NCBI RefSeq assembly: GCF_902713615.1
Contig: NC_052158.1
Span: forward strand, 13,326,546 to 13,390,545
Length of the DNA: 64,000 nucleotides
Direction of reading: 5' to 3'
Origin: Scyliorhinus canicula
Taxonomy: Eukaryota
Both the position numbers and the translations under genes were made by a program. The notes below the pieces were generated by a model. It was not told the DNA's origin. It was given only the letters and a program-made list of their open reading frames with translations, and searched no databases. Below are positions 25,505 through 60,570 of this stretch, piece by piece; the first letter of the stretch is position 1, and every line of letters starts with the position of its first letter.

Positions 25505-26620
25505 TTTGGATTGGATTTATTTATTGTCACGTGTAACGAGGTACAGTGAAAAGTATTTTTCTGCAAACAGCTCAACAGATCATTCAGTACATGGAAGAAA
25601 AGGGAATTAAACAAAATTCAAGAAAATACATGAGAATACCTAATAGGGCAACACAAGATATACAATGTAACTACATAAGCATTGGAATCGGTTGAAGCAT
25701 ACAGGGTGTAGTGTTGATGAGGTCAGTCAATAAGAGGGTCATTTAGGAGTCTGGTGACAGTGGGGAAGAAGCTGTTTTTGAGTCTGTTCGTGCGTGTTCT
25801 CAGACTTCTGAATCTCCTGCCCGATGGAAGAAGTTGGAAAAGTGTGTAAGCCGGGTGGGAGGGATCCTTGATTATGCTCCCCGCTTTCCCCAGGCAGCGG
25901 GAGGTGTAGATGGAGTCCATGGATGGGAGGCAGGTTCGTGTAATGGACTGGGCTGTATTCATGACTCTCTGAAGTTCCTTGCGGTCCTGGGCCGAGCAGT
26001 TGCCATACCAGGCTGTGATGCAGCCCGATAGGATTCTTTCTTTGTGCATCTGTAAAAGTTGGTAAGGGTTAATGTGCACATGCCGAATTTCCTTAGTTTC
26101 CTGAGGAAGTATAGGCGCTGTTGTGCTTTCTTGTTGTTAGTGTCGACGTGAGTGGACCAGGACAGATTTTTGGTGATGTGCACCCCTAGGAATTTGAAAC
26201 TGTTAACCATCTCCACCTCGGCCCCGTTGATGCTGACAGGGGTGTGTACAGTACTTTGCTTCCTACATGCAGCTCTTTAGTTTTGCTGGCATTGACGGAG
26301 AGATTGTTGTCGTTACACCACTCCACTAGGTTCTCTATCTCCCTCCTGTATTCGGACTCGTCGTTATTCGAGATCCGGCCCACTATGGTCGTATCATCAG
26401 CAAACGTGTAGATGGAGTTGGAACCAAGTTTTGCCATGCAGTCGTGTGTGTACAAGGAGTAGAGTAGGATGCTAAGTACGCAGCCTTGAGGGGCACCGGT
26501 ATTGAGGACTATTGTGGAGGAGGTGTTGGTGTTCATTCTTACTGACTGTGGTCTGTTGGTCAGAAAGTCAAGGATCCAGTTGCAGCGTGGAGAGCCAAGT
26601 CCTAGGTTTTGGAGCTTTGC
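25505..26620 (-). mobile_element. Rex1/Babar LINE, 5'-truncated
   Basis: Reverse ORFs: [21 protein letters not shown] and ILSGCITAWYGNCSAQDRKELQRV...LLPSGRRFRSLRTRTNRLKNSFFP. Confidence 0.9.
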
Positions 26621-26639
26621 CAAGTCCTAGGTATTGTTT

Positions 26640-33924: not shown

Positions 33925-35516
33925 TACAGTTCCTGGCCTTGATGGTATGCATCCCAGAGTGCTAAAAGGGATGGCTAGGGAAATTGCAAATGCACTCGTG
34001 ATAATTTCCCAAAATTCACTGGGGTGGTCCCGGTGGATTGGAAATTAGCAAACGTGACAACACTGTTTAAAGAAGGAGGTAGGCAGAGAGCGGGCAATTA
34101 TAGGACAGTGAGCTTAACTTCGGTAGTAGGGATGATGCTGGAATCTATCATGAAGGAAGAAATAGTGAGGCATCTGGATAGAAATTGTCCCATTGGGCAG
34201 ACGCAGCATGGGTTCATAAAGGGCAGGTCGTGCCTAACTAATTTAGTGGAATTTTTTGAGGACATTACCAGTGCAGTAGATAACGGGGAGCCAATGGATG
34301 TGGTATATCTGGATTTCCAGAAAGCCTTTGACAAGATGCCACACAAAAGGTTGCAGCATAAGATAAAGATGCGTGGCATTAAGAGTAAAGTAGTAGCATG
34401 GATAGAGGATTGGTTAATTAATAGAAAGCAAAGAGTGGGGATTAATGGGATGTTTCTCTGGTTGGCAATCAGTAGCTAGTGGTGTCCCTGGGAATCCGTG
34501 TTGGGCTCACAATTGTTCACAATTTATAGAAATGATTTAGAGTTGGGGACCAAGTGCAATGTGTCCACGTTTGGAGACGACACTAAGATGAGTGGTAAAG
34601 CGAAAAGTGCAGAGGATACTGGAAGTCTGCAGAGGGATTTGGATCGGTTAAGTGAATGGGCTAGGGTCTGGCAGATGGAACACAATGTTGACAAATATGA
34701 GGTAATCCATTTTGGTAGGAATAACAGCAAACGGGATTATTATTTAAATGATAAAATATTAAAGCATGCTGCTGTGCAGAGAGACCTGGGTGTGCTAGTG
34801 CAGGTGTCACAGAAAGTTGGTTTACAGGTGCAACAGGTGATTAAGAAGGCGAATGGAATTTTGTCCTTCATTCCTAGAGGGATGGAGTTTAAGACAAGGG
34901 AGGTTATGCTGCAATTGGATAAGGTGTTAGTGAGGCCACACCTGGAGTATTATGTTCAGTTTTGGTCTCCTTACTTGATCAAGGACGTACTGGCACTGGA
35001 GGGTGTGCAGAGGAGATTCACTAGGTTAATCCCAGAGCTGAAGGGGTTGGATTACGAGGAGAGTTGAGTAGACTGGGACTGTACTCGTTGGAATTTAGAA
35101 GGATGAAGAGGGATCTTATAGAAATATAAAATTATGAAGGGAATAGATAGGATAGATGTGGGCACGTTGTTTCCACTGGCGGGTGAAAGCAGAACTAGGG
35201 GGCATAGCCTCAAAATAAGGGGAAGTAGATTTAGGACTGGGTTTAGGAGGAACTTCTTCACCCAAAGGGTTGTGAATCAATGGAATTCCTTGCCCATTGA
35301 AGCAGTTGAGGCTCCTTCATTAAATGTTTTTAAGGTAAAGATAGATAGTTTTTTGAAGAATAAAGGGATGAAGGGTTATGGAGTTCGGACCGGAAAGTGG
35401 AGCTGAGTCCACAAAAGATCAGCCATGATCTCATTGAATGGTGGAGCAGGCTCGAGGGGCCAGATGGCCCACTCCTGCTCCTTGTTCTTATGTTCTTATG
35501 TTCTTATGTTCTTATA
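33925..35516 (+). mobile_element. CR1 LINE, 5'-truncated, relatively young
   Basis: ORFs with NYRTVSLTSVVG, VYLDFQKAFDKMPH, FGDDTK; (ttcttatg)n 3' microsatellite. Confidence 0.92.
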
Positions 35517-38800: not shown

Positions 38801-38857
38801 GCAACCGCGTAGCTATGCTATGGAATAGTGTCATTTGGGCATTGCTGATGTTCCCTC
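38801..38857 (+). CDS. NCR3: Exon 2: signal peptide MLWNSVIWALLMFP (ATG 38815)
   Basis: Polypyrimidine acceptor acttctccttttctccacag|; donor C|gtaagt; phase 1 joins the V exon as Arg. Confidence 0.8.
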
Positions 38858-41800: not shown

Positions 41801-44800
41801 CAGACATAATTAGCATCATACTGCAATATTCACGCTTCTGACTCGCTGGCGATAACAAAGTGTAGCATATTTGAAATCAGCGAATTATTCAGCAGCGACG
41901 CTGTCAGTTCAGACACGATAATATATTCCCATCCAATGATGGACAGCTGCAGACACGCTGTTCCTTTTGATTGGTGGTGCAGACGAAGGGGTAGAAAGCA
42001 AGCTGCCATATAGCATATCGTGAGATTGACTAAATTCTGAATTCAAGCTACAAAATCCTGGGTGGACTCAGTTTTCAGGCAGCACTAGTGTAAACCCTGG
42101 CGAAAAACGCAAACTGTAAGTATTTCAACTCTAGCAAACTGAGGCGTTATACGCTATGACGCCGAACTGCGTGTTGCTATTTGCAGCATCTGCAATCATC
42201 TGTAATTCTGAGCAAATGTTTTTGGGTGCAATTCTCTGGAACTCAAAGAAGAACAATGTAGTGGGGCCTTGGATATTAATGAGGTTGTTTTATGCTTACA
42301 GGAGTTACGGACTCGAGTGTTACAGTCAAGCAAACACCGATTTCGACCCGCGTTGCAGAAGGCGACACCTTACACCTGCATTGTAGTTTTAGTGTGAGTG
42401 CGGCCGAGTCAGGAAATACGTCCATCGGTTCACTTATTTGGTATAAAGATTCCGTGAACAATATAATTAATAGAAACTGCACAGAATATATGGGACGTGT
42501 TCAGCAATCCGATGTGTCTTTCTTCCGGAAATTTAAAAACGCATCCATATCAATAACCAACATGAATCTCAACGAATCAGGAAGGTATTACTGCGAGGTG
42601 GAACTTAACATCGGTGGAAAGGGGACAGGAGAAGGAACAAATGTCACAGTGAAGCGTGAGTTGGCATTATCGTATAGTTTGCACCTGCAGATTCATTCTG
42701 CTTCCAAAAAGATACTTAAGTGGAAACTGGGGATAATTAAACCGCCGGCACATTGAAATTTCCCTGTTGAAACTTGTCCAAACAAATTGTAAACTGACAG
42801 AATCGAATACTGTCCGAGTATTACACTCTGTCCAAATTTATTGCGCTTTTACAATAGTAGAGAACAATTCCAGGCCCGGTGTAGATCAGGCTTTGACAGA
42901 ATCGGAGAATGGTTACAGCTCAGAAGGAGATTATTCTGGCCACCGTGCCTGTGCAAACCCACTCTGTAATCTCACTGCAAGAGCTTGCCACAGTCCCGGG
43001 AACTTTCCTGAAATTGTATGGCATTTCGTTGTTCACATTAGTTCCTTCTCTTTTAAACCCAGGATGTTCTGTCTCCACTACACTCTGATACAGTGCATTC
43101 CATATCCCAAGTTCTTACTGCGTAAAATGCGTGTCCAAAATTCTATGATCTATGATTAACCTAGGACAAAAGTTCGGCACAATATCGTAGGCTGAAGGGC
43201 CTGTTCTGTGCTGTATTTCTCTATCTAAGGATCAAAGACTAAATCTACGCGTGGAGGTAGAGGGCCTGGCGACCGAACACACTAATACCATTCTTTCCCA
43301 TATGCCCTGTTGGCTGTTTTACAAATCACCTTAAATCTGTGTACTCTGGTTCACGACCCTAACATACTAGGGAAGAGATTCATTCTTCCTACACTGTCCG
43401 GACCCTCATGATTTTGGACAGATCATACAATCGAACCTGGAGATACTTTTCCAAGTAGTATCCGCATCTTCTCTAAAGCCTTGACATCCTTGTAAAAGTA
43501 TGGCACACAGAATTGGGAACAATGTCCCAGTCGAGGCCGGAATCGAGTTTTATAAGTGTTCATCATATTCATCAAAGCTTCATTGATTCATTACTGAGTA
43601 CCTCCATTTATAAAGCCCAGGATCCCACATACTTTTTAAACCACTTCGTCAAGGCGCCTTTCTAATTCCAACGATTTCTGCACACACAACGTATATATTC
43701 CCTGCCGCTCTGTGCTTCTGTAACTTCCTTAAAATTTCGACCTTGATTTTATACAGTCTGTCCTAGTTCCCGTCTAAGATGTATCGATTCACATTCCTCG
43801 GCATTACATTTCACGTGCTCTGTGTCTGCCGTTTCCATCAGCCTGTTTATGTCATCTTGAAGTCTATCACGAACCTCCTTATAGTTCGCAACGTTTGGTG
43901 TCATGTTAACTTCTGTTGGTGTCTATGTGACAAGACAAAAATTATCCTCATTCTGATGCCAGACCTTCATCGAGTCGAAAAAGGTCGTTTGTCGCTTATT
44001 CCCCTATTTGTCATTTAGCCATTCCTTACATTTGTCCTTTGATCACACAATCGTGAACCTTGACACGTTAAATACATGTGGTATATTATTAAACAGCGTT
44101 TGGAAGTGGAAGTCCTGTACTGCATCTATCACTTTACCCTCATATTTTTGTATGTTTTATCACTTTACCCTCATGACCCATCTGAAAATAGATTCTTAAG
44201 ATAGTTAAACACGACTTGACTTGAATAAATGCATGCTGGTTTTCCCTCATAAATCTACACCTGTGGAAGCGACTGGGTCTGTTCCCGGTTATTACCTCGA
44301 AAGATTTGACATCACCAATGTTAAATTGACTGCTCATTTTCTTTTCTTAACGCTACAACACTTGTAGCTCTCCCATTCTCTCAAATGTATTTAAAGAAGA
44401 TGAAACAATTGTGGACAATGCCACGGCAAGTTTCTCCCATGCATCCTGAAACTTCCAGGGATGCATATCATTCGTTATATGGACTTTTGAACTTTATGTA
44501 CAGTCGGTCTTTCGAATACCTCCAGTTATCATTTTTTGACCATATCCAGAGTCTCCGGAAGGGCTCCAAAGGCGCTTTCTTCTAAAAGGAAACAAAGTTC
44601 CACAGCGAGGGCGTTTAGCCGCATGTTTCCAGGCGCCCCGACTCGCCTTGTACAAATGGTCTGAATGGGGAACGCACGTCCGAAACCGCACATGGTTTAG
44701 CGAGAGGCCTCCGAAGCGATCGCCGACCTCCCCACAGCCCGAATGCACTATGGGAGGGGCCAGGGATCCTCCCCGCACCCATAACACCCAAACAGGGCAC

Positions 44801-47800: not shown

Positions 47801-50800
47801 ACGTTATTCCTAAGCAAATAGACAGTAGAGTGGAGCGAGAGTGAGATGCACAGAACTGGGGACTCCACACCCCATCACACCGCGCACCCAGCCACAGGAT
47901 CCCCAAAGGAATCTTGTATTCACCGAAGTGGCACTTTCTGCTCACCATGTCCCTGCTATTCTGCATCAATGTTCTTGTCTCACAACCTAAGTTGTTGTTT
48001 TTCTCAACTGAAAGATATGGCCAACAATAGCAATCAGCAAAACACAAACGAGGGTGTGGCACGCTATTCTTCCCTTATCTTCTCACAATCTTGGTGCTCT
48101 GTCTTGCACCGAGGGGCTGGAACGTGTCGGCGGTTTTTCAACTGCAGCAGAAAACCAAGGCTTCATGAGAAGCACAGAGGAAGATGGAAATAAAACATTT
48201 TGTTTTGCTTACTCTCTAAAGGTCATGGCCATTCTGATGTGACAGTCCCACCGAGACAAAGGAACAACAATCTGCTTATGTTCTCAGTGCTGGTGTTTGT
48301 GCTGCTCGCCCTCATCGTAATTATATTAACCTATACTCTGCACCGTTGCAGACCTCCAGGTAATTATCCCAAAGTCGATTTTTTAAACAACCTGGAGCGA
48401 AATAAGGCACACCTACTTTTTTTTAAATTGCAGACTATGAATTGCTATTTGTCTGAAGATTAACATCTATCTATGGCATACATTGTAATACACCTACAGT
48501 AACACGGAAATAATCAGCATTATTGATAATCACAATAACGTCGGCATTACCATTATTATTCGTAACTTCCAAAAATTATTTAATAAGGTCACAACATTAA
48601 TTTTACGAATGTAGTTTATATTTTGCCATTTTCAAGCTGTAAATATAATGGTTCGTGTCCTAGGTATATTATAATTCATAGGAAATATGGCCATTCGGCC
48701 GAACCAGTCCATGCCAGTTTTATACTCCACTAAAGTCTCCACCCAACTTTTCTCATCTAAATCACCTATCATTCTAATCACCAATCCTCCCTCATGCTTG
48801 TCTACAATATCCTTACAGAAAACTATACCATTCACGACGGTCATTCCTTGTGGTAGTTAGTCACACCGTCCTACCCGATTTTCAGTAAAAAGGTTTCTTC
48901 TCATTTCCAGATTTGCTGCTCATTATCTTGTACGAATGGCTTCTATTTTTGCACTTCCCCACAAGACGAAAGATCATGTCCGTATTCACGTCTTCAAATT
49001 ATTGTCACCTCTATTGGCTTCAACTGACGAAACAGACAAATCAATCGTAATTTGGATCATACTCAATACACATTTTGTGAAATACTGATCTAACTACAGG
49101 CTGGCTTTGGAGGGTTTGTTATGCGTCTCTGAGTTCTAAAGTCAGGGTCTCTGCTCCTAGAATTTTGATATCCAGGGAAATCTCGGAAGCTTCTTCTTTT
49201 ATGAAGTATTAGTTATTTTTCATAGTAAACAAACCAGGGGCTGGTTTACCTCACTCAGCTAAATCACTGGCTTTTAAAACAGACCAAGCATGTCAGCAGC
49301 ACTGTTCGATTCCCGTACCAGCCGCGCCAGAATGTGGCGACTAGGGGCTTTTCACAGTAACTTAATTGAAGCCTACTCGTAACAATAAGCGTTTTTCATT
49401 TCATTTCATTTCCGACCCAAGCATCAGGTGCCCTCGGAGAGTTTGTTTTCGCTGTTTCAACACGAAATATTATCAGTGAAGAATCCAGATATTCAAATTG
49501 TTGGTCTTCCTTTTCCCACGAAACTAATTACGCTGAATTCCTTCTTTTCACACACAAGTATCTTTCCCTCTTTACTGTCATGCCTCAAGGTCCCACTATG
49601 GCCCTTTCCCTGCCTCAACAAAATCTACCAAAATTTTATATTCCTCTTTTCGCCACTAAACCATCGTTTTCTAAGAGTGCATGGAACCCATCTGTCAATC
49701 CTTTCCTGAGGTGCACATCCATGGAGATCTGGTATCATCCATGTAACTCTTCCCTGCCTCCACTCCAGTGTCTCAGTGTCATTCTTATAACATGTTGACC
49801 AGAACTGCACGCAGTATACAAAGTGCAATGGAAGTGCAAAATTCAGTACAGATTTGGCAACATTTCCGACTTTCCATTCTCTCCCACTAGAAATGGAAAC
49901 CAGTGTCTAACTGGTTTTGCTAACCCGTGGCACAATATTCAGTGAATTCTGTGGGCTCCATTTGTTCCTGTACCCCAGTTAAATTTGACCCTTACAAGTA
50001 AAAGGTGATTTCCCTGTTCTTCCTACTAACATATACTATTTCACATTTTTTTGTGCTGAAATAAATTTGCCCACTATTTTGCCTATTCTGCAACTTTATT
50101 ACAAATCGAGTAATTTGTAGGCGATCTCCTGAGTATTAGCTATCCCCGTTGCATTTCTCTATTCGGTGATTTGTAAACGACAACTTTAAAAAAATGTTTT
50201 TATTGGCATTTTCAATTTTTCAGAGTAAAACATTTGTGTTCGATATTTACAATTTATACAGTTTTTTATGTACATACATCTTCCTTGCTCTCTCTCTCTC
50301 TCCCCCCCCCCTTCCTGTCCCCTCCTTGGTATCCCTCTCTTCCACCCTATCTCTGAGCGCCTGTTCCCCCTCATTTTCCCCTTCCCCAGACTGCCCATAA
50401 CTTTCCTCCTTCGCAGTGTTGATACGGGGATTCTTGGATTGTTAAACACCCCCCTCCCCTCCCCCCACACCCCACACACAAACGCCATGATCATTTTATC
50501 TATGCTATGGATTAAGGCCTTGGGGATGAAGATCCATATGAATCTGAACAGGAAGAGGAACCTGGACAGTACGTTCATTTTGATCATCCACACCCTTCGC
50601 GCCAGTGAGAGGGGGAACATATCCCATCTCCGTAGGTCCTTTTTAACGTCCTCCACCAGACTGGTCAGAATCCACTTGTGGATCCATGACCAGTCGTGGG
50701 CTATCTGGGTCCCCAGATAGTGAAATTTCCTTTAGACTAGTTCCTCCAGCTCTGTTCCGCCACAATTTGGATTCACCGGGAATTCCTTGTTCTTGCCCAT

Positions 50801-53800
50801 GGACGGTTTGTAGCCTAAGAAGGCCCTGACCGCTTTCAGCAGCTGCATGATTGCGCTCAAACCTAACTCTGGTTCCAAGAGGAGCACGTCATCCCGTCCA
50901 GCTTTTGGCATCTCACATAGCGATCACCAGGGGTTCAATTGCTGGGGCAAACAGGACGGGGACAGAGGGCATCCCGGCCATGTGCCTCTGTGCAGGTGAA
51001 AGTATTCAGAGCTAGTGGTGTTGGTCCGAACGCTCGCCTTGGGGGTGTTTTACATGATTTTCACCCAGGTGAACCCTGCTCCTAGTCCAAACCGCTCCAG
51101 TACTTCAAAGAGAAACTTCCACTCGACTCTGTCGAAGTCCTTTTCTGCATCTAGGGAGTCAATGACCTCTTGTGTTCTCTCCAGGGGTGGGAGGAGGGTT
51201 ATTATTACATTCATCAGCCACCTGATGTTCGACGTTAGCTGCCTACCCTTGACAAAGCCCGTGTGGTCCTCTACCACAATGTCTAGTATACAGATCTCCA
51301 GTTAGGATTTTCGCGGGTACCTTCATGTCTTCAGTAAATGGGTCTGTACGACCTGCATTCCGTGGTGTTTTGTCTTTTTTGGGTATCAGCGATATTGTGG
51401 CCTGTGTTAGCAGAGGAGGCAGGGTGCCCCTCCCTAGTGGGTCTGTGAACATATCCCTTAGGTGTGGTCCCAGGTCCGGCGCAAATATTTTATAGAGGTC
51501 CACCGGGAACCCATCAGATCCTGGTGCCTTCCCGGCCTGCATGGGGCTGATGCAGTCCATGATTTATCTCAGACCTGTTAGTGCTTCCAGTCCCCCCCTC
51601 CTCCCGCCGGCCCTCCCCCACAAGAGGCATATCCAGTCCATCGAGGGACTGTTTCATCCCCGCGCCCCCGTCGGGGAGCTTGGAGGTGTACAGCCTTCGG
51701 TAGAAGATGTGAAATGCCCGGTTGACCACTTTGGGTTCAGTTACCAGTCTGCCTCTGCTATTTCTACCTGTGCTATCTCCCTCGTGGCTGCCTGCTTTCT
51801 CAGCTGGTGAGTCAGTAGGCGGCCAGCTTTTTCTCCGTGTTTGTAGAAGGTCCCCTGTGTCTGGCAGAGTTGGTGCACTGCTTTCCTGATGTGTAGCAGG
51901 TATTTTTTTTGCAGTTTTTTTGTCTCCGCCAGCAGCTCTACGGTCGGGGCCTGGGAGTACCTTCTGTCAACCACAAGGATGGAGTCGATGAGTTGCTGCC
52001 TGGCTGCCCACTCTTCCCTTTCTACGAGCGTTATAGGCTATAATTTCTCCCCTTTTCATGGCCTGCAGTGCCTCCCAGTGCCCGTCTCCAACCTACATCC
52101 ATGTAGTGTGGGGCATGTTTGAAGATGACTGTCACGGAATATTCCGCTCTTACTATTCCTCATTTCCCCACTGGAAAGAAGTCGATCCGGATGCATACCT
52201 TGTGGACCAGTGAGAAGAATAAGAATTCCCTCTCACCAGGGTGCAGGAACCGCCATGGGCCCCGTCCCCATCTGTTCCATGAATGTTCCCAGCTCCCTAG
52301 CCATGCTTGTCTTTTTTCCCGTTCTGGGGTTTGATGGGTCAGTCAGCGGGTCCTGAATGCAGTTAAAGTCGCCCCCCGCCCCCCAACATGATCAGTTAGC
52401 ATGTGTCAATGTCCGGCATTTCCGCCATGGTCTTCTTTAAAACGTCTGTGTCATCCCAGTTGGGCATGTAAACATCTCAGGCACCGCTGAACAATATGTA
52501 CTGTCCCCTTCTGTCCGCAACCATCTTCGTCCTCTTGATAATCAGCGTGGCTACTCCCCTAGCCCTTGTTCCGGAACATGAATGGTGCGTCTGTCCCACC
52601 CAGCCTTTTCTTACCCGCAGTCGGTCCTTCCCCCTCATTTGATTCTCCTGCATGTGGGCCTTTATACTACTTAAGTGCGTGAACACTCTGGATCATTTGC
52701 CTGCACCGTTAAGAACCTTACCATTGTAGATGATGATCCTGACGGGGGGTTTCTGTTGCCGTTCCTGCGGGGTCGCAGGACGCGCCCCTGCACTCCGGGT
52801 TTTCCCATTGTGCAGGGGGCACCCAACATCGCCGCCAACTATATGTCCGCCACGTGGTGTGCTTCTGCACTCCGGGATTTCCCTTTATTTAAGGACTTTC
52901 CAAAGTAGCTGCTTGCGGCGCCATCTTGTTTCTTCGGCCTGCTCTCTGCCTGCCAAAGACAATCCCGGTGCCGACTCTTTTTCCGTCCTGTTTCCCACAT
53001 ATTCTTTGTTCGCTCCCAGCATCTCCCCTTGCCCCCCATCCCCCCACCCTCTCCTCCCCGTTCTCCCACCTTGCTCCCCCCCCCCCCCCCCCCCCCTCAG
53101 GCCAGGAGCTCCCGCCATGCTGGAGAGAAAACTGCCTGTTTTCCCGTGCTAGCCCTCCCCGGTAGTAGGTCCACCCCAGGGCTGTTCGACTACAACTATT
53201 AATGTGATTGATCCGTTATATTGCGTTAAATGTAATCGCCGACTGTTGCGATTCATTATTCCCGCCAGTGGAACACTTCAGCCCGTGGGTGTCCCGGCGG
53301 CGTGAGGTGACTTCACTGGGAAAACCCGCTGACAAGCGGCGGAAAAACAGAATCCTGGCACCAGTGAACGGTGAGCCGCGAAGAAACAAGCAGCTGGGGA
53401 ACCATAGATACAACCCATTGTGCGAATGTAGGGTTGGGCGTGAAAAATGGGACCCTGGGAAGCTGAGAGAGCAGCCTGAACCTCTGAATCTTTAATCCTA
53501 CTTAGCACCAAGTAGCAATAAAATCAGTTTGGCGCTTCTATCATTGTAAACATATCCAATGTACTTCATAGGAGTCATTAGACAAAATTTTATAACGAAT
53601 CGCAGAGGGACGTGTTAAGCCCGTTGGCAGCTGCTGTGGAGTGAAGTAGAGGGGAAACCAGAAGAACAGAACAGCAGCAAAGTATAAGGCAAAGTTGCCA
53701 TAGTCCCAGATGACCATAGGCTGTTTTCCCCTTTGAAGGGGAGAGCTAATTTAACCTGAACATCATCACACCTCAGGGGCAAGGTTAAGAGGGCGGGACT

Positions 53801-56800
53801 TGGCGAATAATCTCATCCCGTGCTGTTGGCCACGCGTTGCATCACGAACCAGCGGCCTAGCCAAGTGCACTAAACAGGCCACGTAGCAAAGTCGAACACC
53901 ATCAGAACTACAAGAGCGCAAAATCATCTGTGCTGCACTGCATTCAAGTAGATGTTATTTTTTAAAAAATCATAACATTACAGGGTCATGATAGAAATTG
54001 CAGGTTATTGAAACCTAGTAAACCTCAGTGTTTCAAATGTCAGTCATTTTCTCCAGTGCCAAGCTTGTTCTTGAACGTTCCAATGTTTTTTTTAAAGTTG
54101 CATTATAAGATTATTAACGATAAACTGCGAATAATATGATTTGTAAAGTAAAAGGGCCAGTTAATGAAGAAATATATTCCGTTCTTAAAGTTTTTCTATA
54201 GTTTTGACGGTCGTATTTGGATTGTTAGTTTTGTTTTAGTTTAAACAGATCTAATAGATTTTAAAATTTTTACAGCTCAAGCAACTGGAGCCCAAACTGT
54301 AAACGAGGTATGCACCATAATTTATTGAACACTCTTGATTTGCACTATTATGGATTACCATTGTAGCGGTGTCTTCTTCAGTAATATGATTCACGTTGCA
54401 CGAAGCCACAGGATCAGAACCACTGAATCACAGAAAATACAGTGCAGAAAAGGTCCTTCGGCCCATCGAATCTGCACTGACACATGAAATATACCTGACC
54501 TACCTACTCATCCTATGTGCCAGCATCTGGTACGTAGAATATCACGATGTGCCATGAGCTCATCCAGGTACGTTGTAAAGGATGTGAGGCAATCCGCCAC
54601 TACCACCCTCCCAAGCAGTGCATTCCAGACCGCCAGCACACTCTGGGTAAAGAGATTTTTCCTCACATCCCCTGAAACGAAGTGGAAGCCCGGTTTGTGA
54701 GCTGGAGCGGCGGCTGGGGGCACTGTGGAGCATCAGAGAGGCGGAGAGTGCCATGGATGGCACAAGTAGAGAGGTGGTCACACCGCAGGCTCAGAGTCTG
54801 CAGGCAGGAATAGAATGGATAACCACAAGGCAAAGCAAGAGAGCTAGTCAGACAGTGCATGAATCTCCTGTGGCCATTTCCCTGCAAAACAAATATACTG
54901 CTTTGGATACGGTTGTGGGAAATGACTTCATGGGAAAGCAGCAGCAGCAAATCCGTTGTACCACGGATGGTTCTGCTGCTGATGGGAGGTGCAAAACGTG
55001 TGTGAATGCAATAGATATAGGGAATTTGATTGTAAGGTGATTTGATTGTAACAGGAATGGATAGACATTTCTGTGTCTGCAAATGAGACGACAGAATGAT
55101 ATGTTGCATTCCTGCTGCTCGGGTCAAGGATATCTAGGAGTGGTTACAGAAGATTCTGGAGGGAGAGATGGAACAGCCAGTGGTCGTGATGCTCGTCGGC
55201 ACCTACGACATTGGGGAAAAAAGTGATGAGGTCCTAAAAGCAGATAGCGGGAGTTAGGAAGTACATTGAGAAGTCGTACGGGGAAGGTAGTGGTCTTATG
55301 TTTACTACCAGTGCCATGTGCCAGTCTGGGTAGAAATAGCACGATACATCGGATGAATACATGGCTGAAGAGATGGTGTGAGGGGGAGGATTTCAGATTC
55401 CTGGGGCATTGGGACCAGTTCTGGGGTAGATTGGACCAGTACAAACTGGATGGCTTACACCTAGTCACGACCTGGACTGATGTCCCAGCGGGAGCATTTG
55501 CTCGAGTGGTTGGGGAGGGTTTAATCTTACGATGGGAATCCATACAAGGACTCAGAGGAGGAGGAAAGTAGAACAAAAACAAAATACAGAAAGTGGAATA
55601 AAAACAAATGATTGGCAGATAAAGCAAGGGCCAGATTCAAACAGAACCACAATGAAAAATATTGGGAGCGAGACATGTAATGTTAAAAGACATGGTAAAA
55701 GGCTTTGTACCTTTACTGTGGGCAGCACGGTAGCACAGTGTGTAGCACTGTTACTTCAAAACTCCAGGGTCTCAGGTTCAGTTCCTGGCTTCGGTCACTG
55801 TCTGTGCGGAGACTGCATGTTCTCCCTGTGTCTGCGTGGCTTTCCTCCGGGTGCTCGGTTTCCTCCTACAAGTCCCGAAAGACGTTCTGTTGGTAATTTG
55901 GACATTCTGATTTTCTTCCCGTGTAACTGAACAGGCGTCGAAATGTGACGACTAGGGGCTTTTCACAGTAACTTCATTGCAGTGTTAATGTAATCCTACT
56001 TGTGACGATAAAGAATATTATTATTAAAGTTTTTGAAATTATAAATGCGTTGAGCATTCACAATAAAGTAGATGAACTCACAACGCAAATAGATGTAAAT
56101 GGATATGATATAATCGAGATTATGGTTGCAGGGTGACCAGAGACGGAAACTGAATGTCCTGGGGTATTCAGTATTTAGGAAGGACAGATAAGAAGGTAAA
56201 GACATGGATTGGCAGTCCTACTTAAAGAGTAAATTGACGTAATATTGAGGAAGGATATTAGTGTTGACAATGTGGAATCTGTATGGGTAGAGTGAGAAAC
56301 ACCAGAGGGCAAACAACATTGGTGGGTATTATATGTTCACCCCAAACTGCAGTGATGACGTTGGGAATAGCATTAAATAGGAAATGAGTATTTTAATCTG
56401 CTTATAGATTTGGAAAATCAAATTAACCACAAAGCCATAGAGATAAAATTCCTGGAGTGAATATGGGACGGTTTTCTGGACAAACATGTTGAGGAGCCAA
56501 CTAGAGAACAGGCCATCCTAGACCGGAAAGTGTGCATTGAGAACAGAGTAATTGGTAATCTAGCTGAGCGAGACAACTTGGGGATGACGAATGTTTCATG
56601 AAAGAATTTTTCATCAAAATAGTGTGTGAAGTAGCTGATTCTGAGACTCGGGTTCCGAATCTGAATAAATTTAACTACGATGATATGAGGCATAAATTGG
56701 CTTTTGTTCGATTGGGGAATGGTACTTGAAGGGATGACACTGGCTAGGCAATGGGAAACATTCAAGGAGAGCAGAGGGGAACTGCAACAATTGTTTATTG

Positions 56801-58755
56801 CTGTCTCGTGCAAACGTAAAATGGGCAAGATGGGCAATCCATGGCTTACAAGAGAAATTAGAGATGGCATTTGATCCAAGGAAGAAGCATATAAGCTGGC
56901 CAAGAAAAACAACAGGTCTGAGGATTGCGAGCAGTTTAGATTTCAGCAAAGAAGGATCATGGTGTTGACTAAGAAAAGGAAAATAGAGTATGAACGTAAG
57001 CTTGAAAACAAAATGGAAACTGATTGCAAAGGTTTCTATAGGTACATTAACAGAAAAAGAGTATTGAAAATACATATATTTTTGTCTGTACCGAGGTACA
57101 GTAAAAAGTATTATTCTGCGTACACTTCAGACAGATTATTCCATATATGAAAAGAAAATATCTTGAGAAAACATAAAATACACTATGTAAATACATAGAC
57201 ACAGACATCGGGTGAAGCATACAGGAGTGCAGTACTACTCAGTAGAGAAGATGTCTGAAGCGATCAGATCAGTACATAAGAGGGACGTTTTGGAGTCTGG
57301 TAACAGTGGGAACGACACTGTTTTTGAATCTGTTAGTGCATGTTCTCAGACGTTTGTATCTCCTTCCCGATTGAATAAGTTGGAAGAGGGAATAAGTCGT
57401 GGGAGGGGTTGATTATGCTGCCCGCTTCCCCAAGGCAGCGGCAGGTGTGGGCAGAATCAATGGATGGGAGGCGGGTTCCTTTGATAGCCTGGGCGGTATT
57501 CACGACTCTCTATAGTTTTAGTTCGTTCTTGGGCCAAGCTGTTGCCATACCAAGCTGTGATGAAGCCAGATAGGGTGCTTTCTATGGTGCATCTGTAAAC
57601 GTTCGTAAGAAAAAATATGGACATGCCGAATTTCCTGAGTTTTATGAAAAAGTATAGCTGCTGCTGTTTCTGGGTCGTAGTGTCGACGGGCTGGAGCAGG
57701 ACAGGTTGTTACTGATGTGCACGCCTGGGAATTTTAAGTTTGCAGTATCTCCACCTCGGCCCCATTGATGCAGACAGGGGTATGTACGATACTTTGCTCC
57801 CTGAACTCAATGGCTAACTATTTAGATTTACTGACATTGAGGGAGAGATTCTTGTCGTTACAACACTCCTCTAGGCTTTCTATCTCCCTCCTGTATTCTG
57901 ACTCAACATTGTTCGAGATCCGACCTACTATGATCATGATCTCAGAAAATCGGTAGATGGAGTTGGAGCCACATTTTGCCACCCAGTTGTGTGTGGAGGG
58001 AATATAGTAGGGGGCTAAGTATGGGCCCAGTATTGAGGACTATCTTGGAGGAGATGTTGTTTATCCTTACTGATGGTGGTCTATGGGTCAGAAAGGCAAG
58101 GAGAGTTGCAGAGTGAGGAGCCAAGTCTTAGATTTTGGACATTTGATACGAGCTTCTTAAATTGGGCCATGTTGTGGTCACTTTCACTAAAACGCTCCCC
58201 CACCCCGACCTCAATAAATTTCGGCTTCATTCCCAAGAATTACGTCCAGCACTGCTCCGCCCCTTGTTGGACCCTCTGCATGTTGACCTAAAAAGTTATC
58301 ATGTGTACATTGCGGGATTTCCCATTGCCACTACCCCACACCATCGGAAAACCCGAGGGAGGAGGTGTGCTGCCGGTGGGAACAGAGAATCTCAACGGCC
58401 TGCAACATTTTGCTTATTTCTGAAGCTAGGTGTTGTGCTGCGCCTTTCTAAATGTTGAAAAAAATTATCTGTTTCATTTAAGGAGGAAGACACGTCGGAC
58501 ACTCTTATTTATACAGACCTTAACATCAGCCATGCCCGAGCTGAACGGATTGCGTTCGAGAGGGCGAGGCCACGCAAACAGCGTAAACATCGAACAGCGA
58601 GTGGATCGGTGCCACTTCCAGACGGACGTGCAGAACCGATTATATACGCGGCACTGCACCACACAGGTTGCGATAAGGAACTGGTTCAGTTCGGGCCCAT
58701 GCAGAGCGTCGGAAGGAGTGAAGAGGAAACCATATACTCGACAGTGCGAGTGTAG
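38815..58755 (+). CDS. NCR3: NKp30/NCR3-family single VJ-type Ig-domain receptor, ITIM/ITSM-bearing; join(38815..38857,42302..42655,48222..48359,54276..54307,58483..58755), 279 aa
   Basis: Manual splicing: five coding exons, all GT-AG, junction phases 1,1,1,0, total 840 nt ending TAG at 58753-58755. Architecture is signal peptide, V domain, TM, long tail. V-domain motifs (IGSLIWYKD, NCTEYMGRV, YYCEVELNIGGKGTGEGTNVTV) align by eye with human NKp30 (IGSVTWFRD, NGTPEFRGRL, YVCRVEVLGLGVGTGNGTRLVV). The symbol means family member, not proven 1:1 orthologue. Confidence 0.85.
38900..39118. repeat. (CA)n/(TA)n microsatellite patches in intron 2
   Basis: Direct reading. Confidence 0.8.
39149..39497. 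mobile_element. hAT-superfamily MITE (Tip100-like TIR CAGGGCCGGT), 349 bp
   Basis: Perfect 10-bp TIRs and a perfect 8-bp TSD GCTGGCGA (39141-39148, 39498-39505). Confidence 0.9.
40330..40800 (-). mobile_element. CR1 3' fragment
   Basis: ccagaactggacacaatactccag and CR1 tail motifs. Confidence 0.7.
40825..41375 (+). mobile_element. Two V-SINEs (40825-41000 type C end; 41117-41375 CR1 tail)
   Basis: Heads, cores and tails read directly. Confidence 0.8.
42302..42655 (+). CDS. NCR3: Exon 3: VJ-type Ig V domain
   Basis: Acceptor tatgcttacag|, donor AAGC|gtgagt, 354 nt phase 1-1. Canonical B-strand Cys, C-strand Trp, ExGxYYC and J-like GxGTxVTV. Confidence 0.95.
43140..44200 (-). mobile_element. 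CR1 fragments in intron 3
   Basis: CR1 tail (43140-43225, apparently + strand) and reverse RT-end motifs. Confidence 0.65.
44590..45310. mobile_element. GC-rich non-autonomous DNA-transposon-like element with terminal hairpin
   Basis: GC/CpG-rich island within AT-rich intron, poly-C run and an inverted repeat at 45214-45309; family not identified. Confidence 0.4.
48222..48359 (+). CDS. NCR3: Exon 4: stalk plus transmembrane helix LLMFSVLVFVLLALIVIILTYTL plus HRCRPP
   Basis: Acceptor ttgcttactctctaaag|, donor CCAG|gtaatt, 138 nt phase 1-1; 23-aa hydrophobic run (48272-48340) followed by basic stop-transfer residues. Confidence 0.85.
48640..50180 (-). mobile_element. CR1 fragments with a nested short SINE (49237-49412, +)
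   Basis: Reverse VYCVQFWSTCYKND CR1 motif; SINE ends (tttca)n. Confidence 0.75.
50185..53180 (-). mobile_element. L1-clade element, 5' end present, multiply internally deleted, antisense in intron 4
   Basis: ORF1 start (MAGAPG...), EN motif RVRKGWVGQTHHSCSGTRARGVA, RT GFVKGRQLTSNIR / SLDAEKDFDRVEW, and PLSLARRV...RFLFLF; A-rich 3' end. Confidence 0.85.
53683..53876 (-). mobile_element. tRNA-SINE-like repeat (same family as 4808-4958)
   Basis: Mutual similarity. Confidence 0.6.
54276..54307 (+). CDS. NCR3: Exon 5: 32-nt cytoplasmic mini-exon (A)QATGAQTVNE
   Basis: Acceptor aaaatttttacag|, donor GAG|gtatgc; converts phase 1 to phase 0 exactly as needed to link exons 4 and 6. Confidence 0.7.
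54410..54680 (-). mobile_element. CR1 3' end
   Basis: Reverse RKNLFTQSVLAVWNAL. Confidence 0.8.
54690..57070 (+). mobile_element. CR1 LINE 5' part: ORF1 with SGNH-esterase domain plus ORF2 endonuclease, interrupted by a V-SINE (55718-56015)
   Basis: SPVAISLQNKYTALDTV; NTWLKRWCEGEDFRFLGHWDQFWGR...DGLHL; LN..SIHNKVDELTTQID..GYDII. Confidence 0.85.
57070..58150 (-). mobile_element. Rex1/Babar LINE, second copy
   Basis: Collinear with 25505-26620, with internal deletions. Confidence 0.85.
58483..58755 (+). CDS. NCR3: Exon 6: cytoplasmic tail with ITIM LIYTDL, ITIM IIYAAL and ITSM TIYSTV, then stop
   Basis: Acceptor gtttcatttaag|; phase-0 frame open for 90 codons (EEDTSDTLIYTDL...EPIIYAAL...EETIYSTVRV*). 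Confidence 0.85.
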   Translation, partial: EEDTSDTLIYTDLNISHARAERIAFERARPRKQRKHRTASGSVPLPDGRAEPIIYAALHHTGCDKELVQFGPMQSVGRSEEETIYSTVRV

Positions 58756-58844
58756 TGTTTGTTGCAAAATGCCGTGTTTTTTTCAATTGAAGGCATGCTA
58801 TTAATTTTAACCACGCGGTTATTACGTTTAACCAAAGTTTCTTT

Positions 58845-60570
58845 CAGACCATAAGATGGTCCTAGGCCCATTTGGCCCATCGAGTCTGCTCCGTCGTTCT
58901 ATAATGGCTGATATGTTCCTCATCCCCATTCTCTTGCCTTTTCCCAATAACCCATGATCTACATATTAATCAAGAACTCCCCTTATTAATCAAGAAACCA
59001 GAATTGTGCTTGAGGTGCTGTTACCTACAGGGCTACTGAACTGCAACTAGAAGCAGGAGCAGGCAATTTAGACTCTCGAGTATGCTCCACCATTAAATAC
59101 GTTCAGGGTGATCTCATCGTGGCCTTACCTCCATTGTCCTGCTAGTTCTCTGTAACCTTTCAACCTATTACCAATCAAAGATCTGTCTAACTCTTCCTTA
59201 AATTTACTCATTGTCCCTGCATCCACCACACACTGGGGTAGCGAATTCTACAGATTCACAACCATTTGAGAGAAGTAGTTCCTCCTCATCTCTGTTTTAA
59301 ACTTCCTTCCCCTTATCTCGATACTGTGAATTCTTATTCCAGTATGTCCCACAAGAGTAAAAATCCACTCCACATCTACTGTATCTGTACCTTTTATCGT
59401 CTTACACACCTGAATTTGATCTCCCCTCATTCCTCTCAACTCTAGATAGTATGTGCCTAAACTGCTCAACCCCTCTTCATAGGACAAACACCTCAACTCT
59501 GGAATCAACCCTTCTCTGAACTGCCTCCAATGCCACTATATCTTTCCACCAATTTGGGGGCAGCACGGTAGCACAAGTGGCTAGCACTGTGGCTTCACAG
59601 CACCAGGTTCCCAGGTTCGATTCCCCACTGGGTCACTGACTGTGCGGAGTGTGCATGTTCTCCCCGTGTCTGCGTGGGTTTCCTCCGGATGCTCCGGTTT
59701 CCTCCCACAGTCGTGCAGGTTAGGTGGATTTGCCATGCTAAATTGCGCTTAGTGTCCAAAAGGTTAGGTGGGGTTATTGGGTTACGGGGATAGGGTGGAG
59801 GTGAGGGCTTAAGTGGGTCGGTGCAAATTCGATGGGCCGAATGGCCTCCTTCTGCACTGTATGTTCTATGTTTAAAGGGAGCAAAACTGTGCACAATACT
59901 CCAGGCGCGCTTTAACCAATGCCTTGTATAGTTACAACAAGATCCCTTTACCTTTATGTTCCATTCCCTCAACTATAAATACCTACATTCCATTCACTTT
60001 CTTTGTTATCTGCTGTACTGTCATGCTAGTTTTCTGCAACTCATGTGGGAGGACACCCAGATCCCTCTGTACCAGAGCACCCTGAAGTTCTTACCCACTT
60101 CCATAATAAGTTGCCTTCCTATTTTACAGACCAAAATTCATGACCTCACACTTATCCACATTAAACTCCGTCTACCACATTTTGGCCCATTCTCCTAACC
60201 TCATTGCAACTTACTGTGCCACCTATTTCAGTGTAATCTCAAAATGTGGCTATAGGACCTTCTATCCCTGTATCCAGGTCGTTAATATATATTGTAAAAG
60301 TTGGGACCCAAGGCACCCCACTAGTTGCATCTCATCATTCAAAAAGGACACATTTATCTGGACTCTCTTTTGTAAGTGATCCGGTCTTTTATCCAAGCTA
60401 ATAAATTACCTCGAACCCCAATTGTGTCGTAACCTTCAGTGCAGCACCTTATTAAACATCTTCGGAAGTCGAGATGTACTACATGCACAGGATCCCCATC
60501 GTCCAATTTGCTTGTTATATCTTCAAGAACTCCAGCAAATTAGTCAAAAATGATCCTCTCTTAGTATTCA
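58845..60570 (-). mobile_element. CR1 fragments with a nested V-SINE (59556-59872, +)
   Basis: Reverse ORF IPELRCLSYEEGL...EMRRNYFSQMVVNL. Confidence 0.8.

Follow-up and report, generated by a model that had tools for sequence, protein, structure and literature searches.

A tyrosine-motif tail framed by a 32-nt micro-exon in an NKp30-like receptor gene of the catshark Scyliorhinus canicula

Does a short open segment with three tyrosine motifs in a catshark genome encode the cytoplasmic tail of an immune receptor, and, if so, what kind of signal would such a tail carry? The question is raised by positions 58483–58755 (+) of a 64,000-nt stretch of Scyliorhinus canicula DNA (contig NC_052158.1, positions 13,326,546 to 13,390,545 of the forward strand; the whole stretch is called the window here, and all positions are counted from its first base). 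Direct translation of the segment gave 90 codons followed by a TAG stop. Our analysis supports a type I receptor gene with five exons, in which 58483–58755 is the last to contain coding sequence. The best explanation of the whole, to which we assign a probability of roughly 0.6, is that the gene encodes a receptor of the NKp30/NCR3 family whose tail carries two immunoreceptor tyrosine-based inhibitory motifs (ITIMs) and a SLAM-type switch motif of the immunoreceptor tyrosine-based kind (ITSM), and which would act by an SHP-docking, dampening mechanism.

Both NCR3-like genes of sharks and tails with ITIM/ITSM are already known as kinds, and a gene of this type is expected in sharks. What is new here is the 32-nt micro-exon that frames the tail, the transcript support for the acceptor of the terminal exon, and a pattern in which one tyrosine is conserved and two are not. 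To our knowledge, NKp30 is the one natural-killer receptor that can be traced from sharks to humans. A shark NKp30-like gene with an uncharged transmembrane (TM) segment and an ITIM-ITIM-ITSM tail is a concrete case for the question of whether primordial NKp30 signalled in an inhibitory manner or through a SAP/SHP-2 switch, and the same receptor gene bears on how the activating form of NKp30 arose.

The terminal exon and its gene

The three tyrosines of the exon lie one each in LIYTDL (58504–58521 (+); Tyr199 of the 279-residue model described below), IIYAAL (58639–58656 (+); Tyr244) and TIYSTV (58729–58746 (+); Tyr274, six residues from the C-terminus), and no other tyrosine occurs within 58483–58755. 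A preliminary description of this DNA, which had noted a 90-codon exon with these three tyrosines only, was correct to the base. LIYTDL and IIYAAL matched the ITIM consensus (S/I/V/L)xYxx(I/V/L), and both lie C-terminal to the TM segment in the spliced model. TIYSTV matched the ITSM consensus TxYxx(V/I), with a hydrophobic Ile at the position before the phosphotyrosine (pY-1), and it fits the form TIYxx(V/I). In the part of PMC12151841 that defines the ITIM and ITSM consensus sequences, TIYxx(V/I) is the original switch form of CD150, and the preferences of SHP-2 are given as (I/L/V)xpY(T/V/A)x(I/V/L) for its N-terminal SH2 domain (N-SH2) and (T/V/I)xpY(A/s/t/v)x(I/v/l) for its C-terminal one (C-SH2). 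LIYTDL and IIYAAL matched the N-SH2 preference and TIYSTV the C-SH2 preference, so that the labels ITIM, ITIM and ITSM proposed earlier agree with both the published definitions and the SH2 preferences of SHP-2 (PMC12151841). Acidic stretches (EEDTSD, DGRAE and SEEE) stand ahead of the motifs, and Tyr244 and Tyr274 are 30 residues apart.

The background rate of such matches was obtained from all tyrosines in every open segment in the six frames of the window, scored with a combined ITIM/ITSM pattern. The pattern was matched by 6.1% of these tyrosines (219 of 3585), which gives p ~2.3e-4 for three matches out of three by chance. Among 4216 open windows of 90 residues, that of the tail was the only one with at least three matches. 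In the frame of the tail, the open reading frame (ORF) track could offer just a GTG-started ORF of 48 aa (58609–58755), which is under the default cut-off of 60 aa, and the earlier remark that the track had missed this frame was fair. Longer, spurious ORFs cover the exon in another frame (58430–58804) and on the minus strand. A Pfam search gave no match in the tail.

Upstream of the tail exon, the open frame 42283–42753 (+) matched the Pfam V-set domain (E 1.3e-11) and the open frame 48194–48460 (+) contained a hydrophobic transmembrane stretch. A pyrimidine-rich tract and an AG directly precede 58483, as in a splice acceptor. The exons in question were, however, out of phase: the borders of the V and stalk/TM exons are phase 1, whereas the frame of the tail at 58483 needs phase 0. 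A direct joint of 48359 to 58483 was rejected, as the reading frame is then lost and translation would end after 13 codons; therefore, an intermediate exon was sought. Some eleven residues (RDKRTGTQVVS) of a horn shark protein, XP_067865303.1 (Heterodontus francisci, 280 aa), had no place in the V, TM or tail exons. The interval 48361–58482 was scanned for AG...GT intervals with a length of 2 mod 3 that are open in the required frame. The exon adopted, a micro-exon of 32 nt at 54276–54307 (+), leads from phase 1 to phase 0, has the acceptor tttttacag and the donor GAG/gtatgc, and encodes AQATGAQTVNE, which is similar to RTGTQVV of the horn shark protein and agrees in length with the part to be placed. 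The alternative acceptors 54249, 54258 and 54282 were compatible with the transcript contig described below and were disfavoured because 54276 is exactly collinear with XP_067865303.1.

With this micro-exon, five exons (38815–38857, 42302–42655, 48222–48359, 54276–54307 and 58483–58755) add up to 840 nt without an internal stop and encode a product of 279 aa, with canonical borders at every exon. The product consists of a leader, one VJ-type V domain, a stalk, an uncharged TM segment and a cytoplasmic tail of ~100 residues. Exon 1 (38815–38857 (+)) provides the start codon and signal-peptide leader in 14 codons plus one base and ends in the phase-1 donor CTC/gtaagt. It had the best donor among hydrophobic, ATG-started candidates in an unbiased scan, and its product aligned residue for residue and at equal length with the N-terminus of XP_067865303.1 (5 of 14 residues identical). 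Exon 2 (42302–42655 (+), phase 1/phase 1) encodes in a single exon a germline-joined, VJ-type V-set immunoglobulin (Ig) domain that ends in the J-like G strand GKGTGEGTNVTV. Exon 3 (48222–48359 (+), phase 1/phase 1), with canonical acceptor and donor, encodes the stalk, a TM helix of 23 residues and the stop-transfer sequence HRCR. Downstream of the stop, the 3' untranslated region (58756–59110 (+), approximate end) was traced with transcript contigs; the first ATTAAA resembling a poly(A) signal after the stop is at 59092. From ~58868 this region enters repeat sequence, with a jump in depth and the ends of several contig joints at 58868–58990.

Skipping of the micro-exon would yield a tailless isoform of 191 aa without tyrosine motifs, because the frame then shifts to a stop 13 codons past the TM exon. 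From the exon phases, inclusion or skipping of the micro-exon could serve as a natural switch between a signalling and a tailless isoform. It is also plain from this 32-nt micro-exon how tails of this type can be overlooked, or read in the wrong frame, by automated annotation and ORF tracks.

Transcript evidence was examined over 54100–58990 with two contig sets from the same study (runs X1 and X2) and two raw RNA runs (X4 and X5). In run X2, a contig of 151 nt (depth 2.4) without mismatches joined 54305/54307 to 58481/58483 with GT..AG ends, which is the exact joint between the micro-exon and the terminal exon that had been predicted beforehand. The proposal that 58483 is a splice acceptor was thus borne out, and the frame read in the preliminary description follows once the micro-exon is included. 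In run X1, a contig of 480 nt extended from 58554 through the stop to past 58990, and further contigs in run X2 spanned 58689–58976. Unique intron bins were mostly empty. Sampled words of the V exon were also present in the same two runs (fractions of 0.91 in X1 and 0.34 in X2).

These data bear on the proposal that the exon is nothing more than a frame open by chance, or that it belongs to a defunct gene. That proposal would fit the zero reads in the two raw RNA runs, of which 1% (X4) and 32% (X5) were read, and the fact that protein searches returned no identical protein. It is opposed by the spliced contig at the exact 58483 acceptor, by five exons that are intact, in phase and bordered by canonical sites, by the collinear horn shark protein, and by the presence of both V exon and tail in runs of one study. 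We regard it as highly improbable.

Ectodomain family and the horn shark relative

When the V exon was compared with all PDB sequences by phmmer, the four best matches were human NKp30 structures (3NOI, 9FWW, 6YJP and 3PV6; E 7e-10 to 1e-9), and the alignment spanned the entire V domain with its J-like GxGTGxGT segment. Amphioxus IgVJ-C2 (1.5e-6) and CAR (5e-6) came next. These matches, together with the NCBI name of XP_067865303.1, 'natural cytotoxicity triggering receptor 3-like', support placement of the predicted receptor in the NKp30/NCR3 family by its ectodomain. An NCBIfam search gave noise only, and an AlphaFold2 model of the V domain, for which the alignment contained two sequences, was not good enough for use (mean predicted local distance difference test score, pLDDT, 45.7).

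Human NKp30 (3NOI, 3PV6, 6YJP and 9FWW) and the catshark protein share a single V domain, a stalk, a TM segment and the GxGTGxGT J-like G strand. Human NKp30 has an arginine in its TM segment, and signals through the ITAM-bearing adaptors CD3-zeta and FcR-gamma; its tail is short and lacks both ITIM and ITSM. The catshark protein differs in having an uncharged TM segment and tyrosine motifs of its own: its TM sequence, LLMFSVLVFVLLALIVIILTYTL, contains no charged residue before HRCR, and the basic residue that the mammalian activating form uses for pairing with CD3-zeta/FcR-gamma is absent from it. The uncharged TM segment therefore sets the gene apart from the signalling mode of mammalian NKp30, not from its ectodomain family. 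In nurse shark, Kinlein et al. reportedly described in 2021 (Immunogenetics 73:333) a multigene family of VJ-type, NKp30-like receptors that do not rearrange. Nurse shark NCR3 accessions MT914154–MT914161 are cited in PMC12227049, and NKp30 is repeatedly cited in the literature as a VJ gene of the major histocompatibility complex (MHC) that undergoes no rearrangement.

An exhaustive phmmer search with the 90-residue tail against 1.84 billion representative proteins gave one match, to the last 89 residues of XP_067865303.1 (E 4.4e-6). A search for homologous proteins with the V-exon ORF found nothing, and one with the whole of XP_067865303.1, including matches with E up to 10, returned just XP_067865303.1 itself. 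Cross-species conservation consequently rests on one protein, because the searches gave XP_067865303.1 as the sole relative. By tblastn against the window, residues 12–133 of this protein matched 42292–42657 (+) with 62% identity, residues 134–177 matched 48224–48355 (+) with 55%, and residues 189–280 matched 58480–58752 (+) with 37%. A global alignment of the 279-aa model with XP_067865303.1 was collinear, with 51% identity and one single-residue gap. By exon, the identity was 36% for the leader, 65% for the V domain, 53% for the stalk/TM segment, 36% for the micro-exon and 36% for the tail.

The two proteins share the five-part layout, a similar length (279 and 280 aa) and a similar gene span (20 kb here and ~21 kb in horn shark), as well as an identical J-like segment, GGKGTGEGT, and the C-terminal pattern T-[IV]-Y-x-x-V-R-V-stop. 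They differ in the TM segment, which is uncharged in the catshark, whereas the horn shark protein has a lysine near the cytoplasmic end of its hydrophobic segment. This lysine, residue 166, lies inside the segment or at its cytoplasmic edge. Together with the absence of two ITIM tyrosines, it could mark XP_067865303.1 as a counterpart of the activating type; equally, it might be a mere stop-transfer residue. Between Tyr199 and Tyr244, an island with the sequence TASGSV(P/S)LP (58597–58623; residues 229–237 of XP_067865303.1) differs by one residue between the two proteins. Its conservation hints at a possible additional function, such as serine phosphorylation or docking.

Proposed signalling by the tail

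On the motifs, an inhibitory or switchable function of the tail seems reasonably probable. Binding of a ligand by the V domain would bring the tail beside Src-family kinases, which would lead to phosphorylation of the tail tyrosines. The Tyr244/Tyr274 pair could then serve as a docking site for SHP-2 or SHP-1 through their tandem SH2 domains, with the ITIM binding N-SH2 and the ITSM binding C-SH2, and activating signals within the same lymphocyte would be dampened. Alternatively, TIYxxV at Tyr274 could bind a SAP-like adaptor. We infer phosphorylation, the recruitment of a phosphatase or adaptor, and the inhibitory outcome from sequence. Candidate partners have been reported in sharks: SHP-1, SHP-2 and SHP-2L are described for nurse shark in a section of PMC12151841, and T cells of bamboo shark express an sh2d1a-like gene according to a section of PMC11372145.

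Several observations weigh against a dampening receptor with an ITIM-ITIM-ITSM tail, and they are considered here with the alternatives on which they bear. The tail as a whole is just 36% identical to that of XP_067865303.1. Within conserved flanks, the column of Tyr199 is occupied by His in the horn shark protein (TVPHVELNI) and that of Tyr244 by Ser (SVVSTSL). All three motifs double as generic YxxPhi sorting signals. The spliced junction was seen in one contig of low depth from a run of unrecorded library type, and this contig could conceivably come from a genomic retrocopy. The contig begins with AG two bases before 54276, which is compatible with either an intron acceptor or the end of the TM exon (…CCAG), and a joint between the TM exon and the micro-exon was not observed. 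Finally, run X4 (single-cell poly(A)) and run X5 (oligo-dT) gave zero reads on the tail exon in the fractions read, which is not evidence of silence.

The preliminary description had looked to related sharks for conservation of the tyrosine motifs. In the one relative available, the expectation held for TIYSTV, which is kept as TVYAAV in the sequence TVYAAVRV followed by a stop, and failed for both ITIM tyrosines. By this comparison, the predicted C-terminal switch motif is conserved between the two sharks. The two ITIMs may be either specific to the catshark gene or lineage or lost in the horn shark copy, and XP_067865303.1 may be either an ortholog or a paralog. The replacements by His and Ser within conserved flanks could thus be taken to mean that the ITIMs were gained recently, in one lineage or paralog, or that they vary among the members of a paired-receptor family of which only some are inhibitory, and that they are under no long-term constraint. 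The tail is also the fastest-evolving part of the protein (36% identity, against 65% for the V domain). However, the conserved flanks fit a loss in horn shark at least as well, and a recent gain would not conflict with what is proposed above for the catshark gene. We consider a recent gain improbable as a replacement for the dampening receptor proposed above.

The same comparison leaves TIYSTV as the sole motif conserved in the horn shark homolog, as would suit a tail with a mainly SLAM-like role in co-stimulation or switching. In such a tail, a SAP/EAT-2-like adaptor and Src kinases would be brought in by TIYSTV, and the receptor would be activating or bifunctional. Mammalian NKp30 is an activating receptor, which counts in the same direction. 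According to passages of PMC12151841, the hydrophobic pY-1 residue of TIYxx(V/I) allows binding of SAP (SH2D1A); this residue of the CD150 form is present in TIYSTV, and the sh2d1a-like gene expressed in shark T cells (PMC11372145) would supply an adaptor. On the other hand, two good ITIMs lie upstream of TIYSTV, the ITIM-ITSM spacing resembles that of the inhibitory tails of PD-1, BTLA and KIR-type receptors, and SLAM receptors usually have several ITSMs and no classical ITIM. A co-stimulatory module of this type is rather unlikely in our judgement.

As to the YxxPhi matches, YTDL, YAAL and YSTV could chiefly be signals for sorting and endocytosis by the clathrin adaptor AP-2, so that they would set the surface level of the receptor and not SH2 signalling. 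However, the residues at position -2 (L, I and T) are those required of ITIMs and an ITSM and are unneeded for AP-2, the stricter ITIM/ITSM pattern is matched by every one of the three tyrosines, and the acidic flanks are typical of kinase substrates. A role mainly in AP-2 sorting is therefore judged distinctly unlikely, and docking of SHP phosphatases by an ITIM-ITIM-ITSM tail is preferred.

In design, the catshark receptor resembles PD-1 and BTLA, each with one V-type domain as ectodomain, a TM segment free of charge and a membrane-distal ITIM followed 25–30 residues on by an ITSM; the consensus and the logic of SHP-2 docking are laid out in PMC12151841. They differ in their CD28-family ectodomain, and the catshark tail has an extra upstream ITIM. 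The pY-1 residue of the PD-1 ITSM is Glu, whereas that of the catshark tail is Ile, as in CD150. Teleost NITRs resemble the catshark receptor in their non-rearranging, VJ-type V domains. They comprise ITIM-bearing inhibitory forms and activating forms with a charged TM segment. They differ in that they form a family of bony fish whose members usually carry a second Ig domain, and the likeness drawn here is one of description. NITR is among the VJ receptors listed in a part of PMC11599192.

A wider hypothesis, which is tentative and in our view doubtful, is that ancestral NKp30 was a self-signalling inhibitory or switch receptor, whose ITIM-ITSM tail had a SLAM-type TIYxxV at its end, and not an activating receptor coupled to ITAM adaptors; paired forms would exist in sharks, and the micro-exon would toggle between the full tail and the 191-residue tailless form. 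If so, the paired forms would be represented by the three-tyrosine catshark gene and by copies like that of horn shark, in which both ITIM tyrosines are lost.

Surrounding sequence

No MHC gene was found within the 64-kb window, nor was a second V-set exon; the remainder of the window consisted of repeats, and most of the sequence outside the receptor gene looks repeat-derived. Segments 25726–26626 (-) and 33979–35064 (+) are decayed fragments of reverse transcriptase from non-LTR (long terminal repeat) retrotransposons (Pfam RVT_1, E 3.5e-15 and 2.2e-13). Within intron 4, positions 55740–56067 hold an extremely abundant repeat with a summed contig depth of ~390,000 in runs X1 and X2, many variant letters, and hundreds of raw RNA reads in runs X4 and X5. 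It is probably a short interspersed nuclear element (SINE) that is transcribed from many genomic copies. Beyond the gene, a tRNA-like SINE head, GGCAGCACGGTAGC..., lies near 59560 (59555–59700).

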